Source: Oikopleura dioica (taxonomy: Eukaryota > Animalia > Chordata). Taken from it: DNA of 64,000 bases. Positions 25,408 to 28,400 of this stretch are shown piece by piece. Numbering within the stretch: position 1 is the stretch's first letter; the number at the start of each line of letters is the position of its first letter. The stretch is taken from positions 3,844,001 through 3,908,000 of the forward strand of contig OU015566.1 of the NCBI GenBank assembly GCA_907165135.1, in the 5' to 3' direction. The position numbers were made by a program, and so were the translations under genes. The notes under the pieces were generated by a model that saw nothing but the letters and a program-made list of their open reading frames with translations, was not told the DNA's origin and made no database searches.

Positions 25408-28400
25408 TTAATTATAAATATTTATATAAAATGCAGGAATATATTTTTTGTTCGTCAATCTCGAAGATGAACATGTCGAGGAATAAATTTCGTGTGCTTT
25501 GATTTGTCGAAAACCACTTCTTCTCCTAGCTCGATCTAAAAAGAGGAGTTCAACCATTGGCATTTGGAAAAAAGAGACCTGGTAGTATTTCAGTCTTTCG
25601 TAAAAAATCTTTTTACAGAGATTGTAAAGTTCCATTTCGTATCGCAGCGGCCCGGACTCTAGAATTTTCGCCGTTTCTGGTGAGTATCCCGGATTTTTAG
25701 CGGTTTTTGATGATGATCCGAATTGAACAGCCCCTGAAGAAACCGTTTGCTATTTGTCACGTGATCTTTATAGGTACTTACAGGGATCATGCTTGGCAGC
25801 GTGCGCGCCATCGAAGTATTCTGGGAGCATTTTGCTGAACAGCGTCAAGGTTTCATTAAAATGCTCTGAAAAAGACATCACCAAAAAGGGCTGAAAAAAG
25901 CTCACCCAAAATGCCAATCATGTAATAATTCTTGACAATATGATTTTTCGCAATATCCGTCGCAACTCTCAATTTATTCCAGTCGTTCTTATGGCCCCAT
26001 TTTGACACGTTCTTTGGGTCCTTTACTTTGCAGTTTTCACCATTTGTTGCCCCGTTCGTTCCGCAGAAGTAAGAGACCATCACTTGAGTTGGTTCGAAGG
26101 GGGCTGACCACTTTGACCAGTGTGTAATATGGGCAATGCTAAGCGCTAATCCTTTGAGATCCGATAAATACGCAATGGGCTCCCAAGGTGCATCTTGCCG
26201 ATAAAATTGACAAATGATAATTTTAAAAAAATTCAGAATAATACTAAAAAATAAGTATAACTATTGAAAGAAAGGGGTTATTATATATCCTGAAGGGAGA
26301 AGGTCACTGATAATTTATCAGTGATAAAGCACCGAAACCAGATATTTTTATTTCCGTTACTTTCGTCCAATCCCATGCCATATTTTGGGCAACCTTCGAA
26401 GCAATTCTGCATAACGTTATAAGAAAAACGACTTTTATCAATTATATAATTATTATTATTATCTTTTGGCCACCTTCAGAAATGAGTTCCCTATCAGAAC
26501 TTGCCCGCAGCGTCCTCCCAAACACTGAAAATTTATCTCAAAATGAAGATCTTTTTGTCAACACTATGCAGAATAGTTCTACATTCCGCAGAATAGTTCC
26601 ACTTTTTGCAGAATAGTTCTGCATGCAGAATAGTTTCGACCCCCTCCCCATGCCAGCCCGCCTGATTTTTGCCCAGATTGGTCGGTCCGAGTGTTCCAAT
26701 CTGTATCATACAGACTGTATGTTACTTGAAATTTCCTTCTTAATAATGAGAATGAGTAGAAATGCCGGAAATCTGATGGACCGCGCACTCTCAGTCGAGG
26801 AAGGCGCTAAGTCGCGCTGATGGAGGAGGAATGTGCCCACCGCCAGGTGTAAACTCCTGCAGGGGCTTCTCCCTCGCCCGACTCGACTCGACGCAACGCT
26901 TGTCTCGGGTGCGCGTTTTTTCTGGCATTTTGGGAAATGCGTCTTTTCTGGCATCGCGTTCTTTCTGGCAGTCGCCTCTTTTCTGGCATTGAAGTCTGAT
27001 TCATTGAATTCTAATATCAAGTAGGGTCTACCAAATCTAATCAACTGTTATTTCCTTCTTAAATTATCTTCAAGAAGAAGAACCCGTAGTTTTGAATATG
27101 ATTGAGGGGACCAATTTCTTGGCACTAGAATCGAATAAAGAATTATTAGATCATCATAATAAATGCTGAAAATCTTTTAAATTGTGTTAATGATCAGCAC
27201 TATTTTCTTTGATGATAAAAACTTATAAATCAAATAAAAGTTTTGCCTGTGGCAAGTTGCTATTGAAGGTAAAGGTTTTATGCTATTCATATCAGCTTAT
27301 TAGATTTGGTAGACCCTACTCAATATCAGAGTAAAATGAATCAGATCCCAGTGCCAGAAAAGACGCGACTGCCAGAAAGAACGCGATGCCAGAAAAGACG
27401 CATTTCTCAAAAATGCCAGAAAAGACGCGCACCCGCTTGTCTCAAGTTGAGCCGAGGAGTATCACTGGATGAGTTAGCACATTTCGGTGGGCATGTAACA
27501 TGCCGCATGTTGCATCTTTTGTGCTCATGAACGGATAGGGAAGGTGATAGATCGACAAGTTTTATCGGCGAGATTCACCGTGGGAGCTCATTTCGTATTT
27601 ATCAGAGCTCAAAGGATTAGCGCTTAGCATTGCCCATATTACACACTGGTCAAAGTGGTCCACCCCGTTCGAAGCACTCGTCGCTTTTTCGTTGAACGCA
27701 TTGATCTGAAAATTATATTATATTATTTTACAAGTTATAAATTATAACTCTAACCTAATGTTTGTTCAAAATCTTCTTCAGATCCCTTCCAGGTATGCCT
27801 TGCTCCTTGTCGCTCATCAGTGCCCATCTTTTCGAACCCATATCGCTGAAAATAGTAGACCGAGTTGAACCTCCCCATTGGATGTCGAATCACATTGATG
27901 TATGTCGGCTGGTCCATTCCAACATCTGTGAAATTCATCCAATGATGATGCTTGAGAAGGAAAAATTTTCCTGGTTTTTCTGCTCGTTTTGCTGCCAAAT
28001 GATTTGCGAGCTCAAGTTCGCCGTCGGTTCCATCATTTCCATTCTTTGCGCAGTTCGCTTTGTCTTCTACTCGAATGCATGGAGGCTGGTAATCCAAGTA
28101 GAAATCGTTGTCTTCCGAAAGGACGTATAAAATGTACTTCATCGAGGTTCCACCGCATTTGGGCATTTTATTGTGAAAGACGAAATTGCGATTGGGAGGA
28201 GCCATGTTGAGCGGGGAAGATCAACGAGGCCGGATTCGGGACTCGCAAAAACAGGCGCTACTTTTGGCTGAACTTGGACTTCTGGGTGGGGAGGTTTTGG
28301 GACTTTTTGGGGACGACTGGGCTTGGAGCCGGGGGTTTTGGATGTTGGGTTTTGGGGTGGGGCAGGATTGACTGGGGCTACTGGAGCTTGAGGAGGATTG

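Follow-up and report, generated by a model that had tools for sequence, protein, structure and literature searches.

The transposon in exon 2 of g1026

We analysed a window of 64,000 nucleotides (nt) of the Oikopleura dioica OKI2018_I69 genome (assembly GCA_907165135.1, contig OU015566.1, positions 3,844,001 to 3,908,000; G000:C4:3844001-3908000), in which a 1567-bp DNA transposon splits exon 2 of the minus-strand sulfotransferase gene g1026. A preliminary description of this DNA had placed such an element, with an 8-bp target-site duplication, inside the sulfotransferase coding sequence, and had proposed that it is built, like an introner, to be spliced out and so creates a new intron. The placement is confirmed at 26100-27666. 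As to the effect of the element, we consider it probable that a young insertion disrupts exon 2, and unlikely that a newborn intron is removed there. The features of the locus, in window positions and with miniature inverted-repeat transposable element abbreviated as MITE, terminal inverted repeat as TIR and 3'-phosphoadenosine 5'-phosphosulfate as PAPS, are:

25906..26091, minus strand: downstream part of exon 2 (PTQVMVSYFCG…GILG), intact, followed by three more intact exons to about 25458
26092..26099: left copy of the 8-bp target-site duplication, GTTCGAAG (coding strand CTTCGAAC)
26100-27666, minus strand (its GT...AG orientation is that of the host gene's strand): composite non-autonomous DNA transposon, 1567 bp, with no open reading frame (ORF) of note
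26100..26206: left arm ("CT end", GGGGCTGACC...), with the proposed acceptor AG on the coding strand at 26105-26104
26396..26639: piece of a third, abundant MITE family, with GCAGAATAGTT repeats and 17-nt inverted ends
26907..27434 (element positions 808-1335): nested 528-bp MITE of another family, with TIRs of about 124 nt starting GGGTGCGCG
26898-26906 and 27435-27443: 9-bp duplication GCTTGTCTC of the nested MITE
27560..27666: right arm ("TG end", reverse complement GGGGTGGACC...), with the proposed donor GT on the coding strand at 27663-27662
27667..27674: right copy of the 8-bp target-site duplication, GTTCGAAG
27667..27705, minus strand: upstream part of exon 2 (…DQCVQRKSDECFE)
27755..28205, minus strand: exon with the PAPS-binding loop PKCGGTS, matching Pfam Sulfotransfer_2
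28202..28222, minus strand: segment with a net 1-nt frameshift, in a short run of C, relative to the orthologues of two other lineages

The large exon of g1026 matches Sulfotransfer_2 (PF03567) with 31.7 bits against a gathering cut-off of 22, and the PAPS-binding loop is readable in exon 1. A relative is named dermatan/chondroitin uronyl 2-O-sulfotransferase in one source, and the host gene is classed as uronyl/heparan 2-O-sulfotransferase-like. At the frameshift, the upstream frame ends in …ESGLVDLP and the downstream frame starts with PLNMAPP; the public gene model steps over the lesion by calling a GT-AG "intron" of 176 nt (about 28261-28086), and thereby loses the PAPS-binding loop. The deposited g1026.t1 protein is therefore probably not the real product, and users of this gene model should be aware that it is truncated and lacks the loop. 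In the public model, intron 1 (minus strand, about 29087-28973 in the window) has GA-AG ends (…ATAAG/GAATTG…TTTCAAG/A), the commonest non-canonical intron type reported for O. dioica.

The element is flanked on both sides by a perfect copy of the 8-bp duplication. Its two arms agree at 57 of their 59 outermost nt, the mismatches being positions 5-6 (CT at the left end, TG at the right end), so that on the coding strand the element starts with GGG/GTGGAC and finishes with GGTCAG/CCCC (slashes mark the proposed splice sites). The preliminary description had singled out this mismatch as the only one in the first 59 nt, which is correct for that stretch; the arms reach about 107-117 nt, however, and over this full length they differ at nine positions, of which positions 5-6 are the outermost. 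Between the arms, the element is a composite that contains the nested 528-bp MITE and the piece of the third MITE family. The longest ORF inside the outer element has 112 amino acids (aa), and no family match was sought for it. An inverted repeat running on into the flanks was considered and rejected: the palindromic core TTCGAA of the local duplication mimics such an extension, and the flanks of the second full copy are unrelated.

A small family with fixed left and right ends

A pattern search with a 29-nt arm core, allowing up to 3 mismatches and controlled with reversed sequence, was run over the whole assembly (64.28 Mb, 19 contigs), and a DNA similarity search agrees with its outcome. 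The core matches 6 sites, all of them exactly, compared with 0 in the reversed control. The 6 ends resolve into 4 elements, i.e., two full copies, one half copy, and one 45-nt stub; those outside the window are:

C5:2749989-2750958 (L012:1501-2470): copy A, the other full copy, 970 bp, with duplication AGGAGGGC and no nested MITE
C5:1467098: half copy of the outer element
C2:9779700-9779744 (L049:6701-6745): 45-nt stub of a TG-end arm, 100% identical to the family

None of the other copies of the outer element carries the nested 528-bp MITE. The half copy and the stub both lie outside long open frames. The stub is located about 450 bp downstream of a SNF2-type helicase exon, and this isolated sequence may be a remnant of excision or of abortive repair. 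The arm core found no match in a metagenome scan.

In every family copy found, all CT ends are alike and all TG ends are alike, so the asymmetry is fixed throughout the genome, as the preliminary description had envisaged. Like arms are identical between copies at 105-107 of 107 nt, whereas within a single copy 9 of 107 positions separate the left arm from the right; identity between the interiors is only 80-90%. The left/right differences are thus ancestral to the family. Fixation of the CT/TG asymmetry needs no selection, because the two to four elements are descendants of one progenitor and share it by common descent. The near-perfect termini, together with the perfect duplications, speak for a recent date of the insertions.

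Empty sites and the interrupted allele

The ancestral peptide that the preliminary description had reconstructed, ECFEPTQVMVSYFCG, is exactly encoded by orthologues from a related lineage (P0151 and P0159), and the target sequence is single in DNA from a metagenome (contig L037) as well as in a metatranscriptome contig that resembles mRNA (L038). The empty site is thus present, uninterrupted, in related lineages, and the junction of a non-carrier allele would read TTCGAAC^CAACTCAAG. Eight base pairs that are duplicated here and single in the orthologues are the signature of a real transposition. The assembly derives from one highly heterozygous male (about 3.6%) and was built from Nanopore reads with Illumina polishing (PMC8008620), a setting in which a long-read assembly could in principle have misplaced an element into the exon; such an artefact is extremely improbable given that the duplication is perfect and its sequence occurs just once in the orthologues, and given that copy A has the same anatomy.

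In the reading we favour, a non-coding cut-and-paste transposon of low copy number, whose arms are about 107 nt long and whose duplication is 8 bp, has recently inserted into exon 2 of g1026 in the haplotype that was assembled. The assembly has no second copy of this orthologue, and the next paralogue shares 50% identity. The outer element may have already carried the second MITE at that time or may have gained it later. Translation would enter the element for six codons and then stop (…ECFERGGPL and a stop codon), so the interrupted allele is most likely null or strongly hypomorphic, and it is probably still segregating. The public model P0001 (Oidioi.mRNA.OKI2018_I69.chr1.g1026.t1) finishes in just this way, with …ECFERGGPL, six codons inside the element. 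Its annotation was made by AUGUSTUS with intron and exon hints from RNA-seq of a laboratory culture (PMC8008620), and this truncation is mild evidence because the hint RNA came from the culture and not from the assembled animal.

Sequence decay in g1026 was assessed from lineage-specific substitutions, which number 5 in the Okinawa lineage versus 6 in the sister lineage for the downstream exons, and 2 versus 9 for the upstream exons. There is no Okinawa excess, in keeping with a very recent event, and this is uninformative on decay because the insertion is young.

A splice route on paper

Excision of 27663-26104 from the coding strand would leave 15 extra nt (3+4+8) that are in frame, free of stops and read as ECFE-RAPFE-PTQV, just as the preliminary description had calculated; the predicted spliced junction is GAACGGG^CCCCCTTCGAAC. 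Within 60 nt of the element's ends there are 20 GT-AG pairs, 8 of them in frame and 3 stop-free. Chance expectations were estimated by simulation, with shuffled-TIR elements placed in this site and with random 2-nt mismatches at positions 5-6. An in-frame, stop-free GT-AG pair arose in 9% of the shuffled-TIR elements within 8 nt of the ends, in 31% within 20 nt, and in 66% within 60 nt. Random mismatches at positions 5-6 produced the combination of GT and AG, one dinucleotide per end, in about 4% of cases. If the insertion is simply disruptive, the dinucleotides at arm positions 4-5 (GT) and 5-6 (AG) would be an inherited left/right difference of the family, which yields an in-frame route by happenstance of orientation and phase.

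Copy A provides a second exonic insertion for comparison. At its own locus, it splits an open frame of 128 codons that runs on the opposite strand. This frame has a weak match to Claudin_2 (E = 0.0019, below the cut-off), and its orthologue on a marine metagenome contig (L051) has 89% protein identity and an uninterrupted site, which indicates from sequence comparison that copy A, too, lies within a conserved coding exon (claudin/PMP22-like, first transmembrane segment). Copy A is antisense to the GT...AG orientation, so that the coding strand reads GGGGCTGACC…GGTCCACCCC and lacks the GT and AG. Among the exonic full copies, one is thus sense (g1026) and one antisense (copy A); with n = 2, the sense bias that a splice-oriented introner should display, and that the preliminary description had expected, is not seen. 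Even in antisense, the symmetric part of copy A's arms supplies two GT-AG pairs that keep the frame and give no stop, and splice routes on paper therefore arise easily.

Splice sites and transcript evidence

The proposed splice sites were compared only with the introns of g1026 itself. An unsupervised splice-site weight matrix from the window was dropped, as its candidates were mostly false introns with no length peak near 47-49 nt. The four clear native GT-AG introns of g1026 are 40-49 nt long and end in TTTTCAG, TTTTTCAG, TTTCTTCAG, and TTTTTAG. At positions -4 to -12, these introns have 6-9 pyrimidines, compared with 3 of 9 in the proposed acceptor AAAGTGGTCAG; the latter lacks the T-tract that every native g1026 intron has, and the preliminary description was right to add a caveat about the missing pyrimidine tract. 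The proposed donor GTGGAC fits the U1 consensus only from -1 to +3. The native donors of g1026 are also loose, with GTTAGA, GTCTCT, and the GA-AG intron of the public model.

The proposed intron would have 1560 nt, compared with a genome median of 49 nt (PMC8008620). In the pre-mRNA, the two arms would pair with a predicted energy of about -180 kcal/mol and bury both splice sites. Word-index protein searches with regions of P0001, P0151, and P0015 that span the site, in a length window of 0.55-1.75 x query, returned no protein containing ECFERAPFE; all they yielded was the truncated model and, from other lineages, orthologues without the interruption. When the ORFs on either side were looked up as exact proteins, in order to trace other Okinawa-lineage contigs, nothing was on record.

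Weighing the readings

A number of findings weigh against a merely disrupting insertion. The donor derived from the asymmetry is the only canonical donor that gives a stop-free product in this phase, because an in-frame TGA follows at element positions 15-17 in the right arm, and a flipped element has no stop-free GT-AG route at all. Together these are the strongest point in favour of splicing, although the pattern was recognised post hoc; for a single pre-chosen case, the joint coincidence of a mismatch creating GT and AG (about 0.04), sense orientation, and correct frame would be <1%. Both full-length family copies occupy coding exons, and the exons of g1026 past the element are open, with canonical and fully intact splice sites. 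The spliceosome of O. dioica is permissive, with 11-12% non-GT-AG introns (PMC8008620), and the public model of g1026 itself contains a GA-AG intron. The insertion site is a short inter-helix turn: in a structure model of the orthologue (mean predicted local distance difference test score, pLDDT, 83), the insertion point falls in a four-residue turn between helices 225-228 and 233-239, and in the family alignment close relatives are constant in length here, while distant members carry insertions. On this model, five extra residues might be tolerated at the turn or might not, and the site neither supports nor excludes such tolerance. Finally, the upstream frameshift, which lies in a run of C, could be an artefact of the Nanopore-based assembly.

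A rival reading is the proposal that the fixed asymmetry encodes a donor GGG/GT and an acceptor AG/CCCC, so that a sense exonic insertion would be spliced as a newborn intron and add RAPFE to the protein. Its arithmetic and stop-free reading hold, the asymmetry is present in every copy, the route is the sole stop-free canonical one in this phase with none in the flipped element, the roughly 4% coincidence of the mismatch is low, and the site lies in an inter-helix turn; moreover, Aureococcus introners have nearly the same design, with 4+8 = 12 nt added (PMC9860276), transposon-derived introns are known in larvaceans (PMC11282704), with Oikopleura also listed for them (PMC3443670). Against this stand two full copies with no introner-type expansion, an antisense orientation of the other exonic copy, a public model that leaves the element unspliced despite its RNA hints, a donor and an acceptor that are both weak, an intron length far above the genome median, the duplex around both sites, the upstream frameshift in g1026, and searched databases in which, within the length limits given above, ECFERAPFE does not appear. 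Taken together, we regard this proposal as quite unlikely, and the idea of an element "built to be spliced" is not supported, being weakened by the small copy number, the orientation of copy A, the truncated model, and the poor acceptor. A looser variant, in which the element is removed from some transcripts via other sites and a leaky allele yields mixed in-frame and out-of-frame products, is very doubtful. Candidate sites would be GG or GA donors in the GGGG terminus or the duplication and arm AGs such as TTAG at -39 and -46, and about 11% of O. dioica introns start with GA, GC, or GG (PMC8008620); the 20 GT-AG pairs near the ends and the two antisense pairs of copy A point the same way. However, the alternative acceptors all lack a T-tract, and every stop-free canonical route depends on the same weak donor.

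A different possibility is that this copy of g1026 was already dead through the frameshift before the PAPS-binding loop, in which case the insertion would have been neutral and would be silent on splicing. The net 1-nt shift relative to two other lineages and a public model that keeps its frame only by deleting the loop are consistent with this, but the shift falls in a short C run, where the Nanopore-based assembly could be wrong, lineage-specific substitutions are not in excess anywhere in the gene, and g1026 is the only copy of its orthologue, with the next paralogue at 50% identity. We consider prior death of the gene unlikely; a real frameshift would be a second lesion in a dying allele, and the alternative is an error in the C run. 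A young insertion that disrupts exon 2 of g1026, and that probably still segregates, therefore remains the probable explanation of the locus.

Comparison with known transposon-derived introns

In maize, exonic insertions of Ds or dSpm in waxy and adh1 include some alleles that are leaky through cryptic splice sites in the element ends. Wessler and colleagues reportedly described in 1987 that Ds insertions are imperfectly spliced and give leaky alleles. As in those alleles, a non-autonomous cut-and-paste element sits in a coding exon of g1026, and its termini contain dinucleotides resembling donors and acceptors through which most of it could be removed; in maize, RNA demonstrated the aberrant splicing, whereas the route described here is read from sequence.

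A closer parallel is offered by the introners of Aureococcus anophagefferens (Huff et al. 2016; Gozashti et al. 2022), which carry both splice sites and add 12 nt (4 nt of element plus the 8-bp duplication), and for which an isolate without the element has the shorter protein (PMC9860276, Fig. 2F-G). The element in g1026 resembles them in being a TIR DNA transposon with an 8-bp duplication and both splice sites that adds whole codons (12 nt there, 15 nt proposed here). In contrast to Aureococcus introners, which are short, present in many copies, and confirmed as introns by transcripts, it has two full copies, is a 1.6-kb composite, and has an antisense second exonic copy. Gozashti et al. 2022 required at least 5 copies per introner family (PMC9860276), and the many near-identical copies that form introns of unrelated genes in introner families (Worden 2009; Huff 2016; Gozashti 2022) are replaced here by two full copies, so that the published definition of such a family does not apply. 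As far as the summary of Henriet et al. 2019 in PMC11282704 goes, Fritillaria borealis has thousands of short, MITE-derived, non-canonical introns with AG-AC or AG-AT ends and an adapted spliceosome. Going by that summary, the shared traits are a larvacean host, TIRs, duplications at the exon-intron borders, and lineage-specific positions; unlike in F. borealis, there is one long GT-AG candidate here, in a species that keeps mostly canonical splicing. Transposon insertion has also been listed among the routes of intron gain, with indirect evidence in Oikopleura (PMC3443670).

It is improbable that the conserved two-base difference is an orientation-specific splice module, an animal counterpart of the Aureococcus design caught at the birth of an intron. 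Even if true, such a design would not be new in kind, as it is already published for Aureococcus; the new part would be a demonstrated O. dioica case with a two-base switch. Should carriers splice the element, the locus would offer a dated, polymorphic intron birth from a DNA transposon in a chordate with a defined before-state, the two-base arm mechanism could be tested by mutation, and the very high intron turnover of Oikopleura would be tied to transposon activity. The practical value of g1026 is that of a candidate locus for a population and RNA test.

Superfamily and accompanying repeat families

The outer element fits a non-autonomous class II (TIR), MITE-like transposon, with arms of 107-117 nt, 8-bp duplications that differ between copies (GTTCGAAG vs AGGAGGGC), and more than one copy. 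Merlin elements, attributed to Feschotte in 2004, reportedly have 8-9 bp duplications and TIRs starting with GG, and the 8-bp duplication and GGGG termini agree with such ends. The preliminary description had suggested a Merlin-type partner on this basis, but PF12762 (IS1016/IS1595-like DDE, Merlin-type) had no match in a six-frame search of the whole genome, in which a diverged or intron-split gene could be missed. The hAT superfamily is characterised by 8-bp duplications, short TIRs of the YARNG type, and a partner with a hAT dimerisation domain; here only the duplication length fits, the element having GGGG… termini and arms >100 nt, and the genome's hAT-domain loci being dissimilar to its ends. 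Mutator-like elements (MULEs) have long TIRs, 9-11 bp duplications, and a MULE transposase partner with matching ends. Here, the long arms fit, the 8-bp duplication is short, and the surroundings of the MULE-domain ORFs are dissimilar to the element ends.

The genome contains at least seven near-identical ORFs with a hAT dimerisation domain (C1:636914-637105, 641782-641973, 732634-732825, and 737494-737685; C4:380299 and 393172; C5:13847453), and for some of them the spacing is about 4.86 kb, the units concerned sharing 85-92% identity and containing many internal tandem repeats. These ORFs could represent a hAT family that is active or a domesticated gene amplified in tandem. MULE-transposase-like domains were found at C1:5821086-5821304, C5:10116858-10117073, and C2:8822519-8822731, in open frames of 596, 581, and 541 aa, respectively, and Mutator-like autonomous elements or genes derived from them may be present in the genome.

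The family of the nested MITE has stand-alone copies in at least four other places (G000:C5:3066121-3066653, C1:14928404-14928930, C1:15746002-15746531, and C1:13598193-13598722), each with a 9-bp duplication. Their 91-98% identity indicates, by sequence, recent activity of this family of about 528 bp, which also has internal 17-18-nt TGCCAGAAAAGACGC repeats. Copy A has the same piece of the third MITE family that lies at 26396-26639 in the window, and this piece therefore belongs to the body of the outer family. Elsewhere, the third family is about 400 bp long, with GCAGAATAGTT repeats and 43-nt arms (L030:1441-1843; L027:1400-1831), and has dozens of partial matches genome-wide, some of them in short tandem arrays, e.g. 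at C3:923772-923970.

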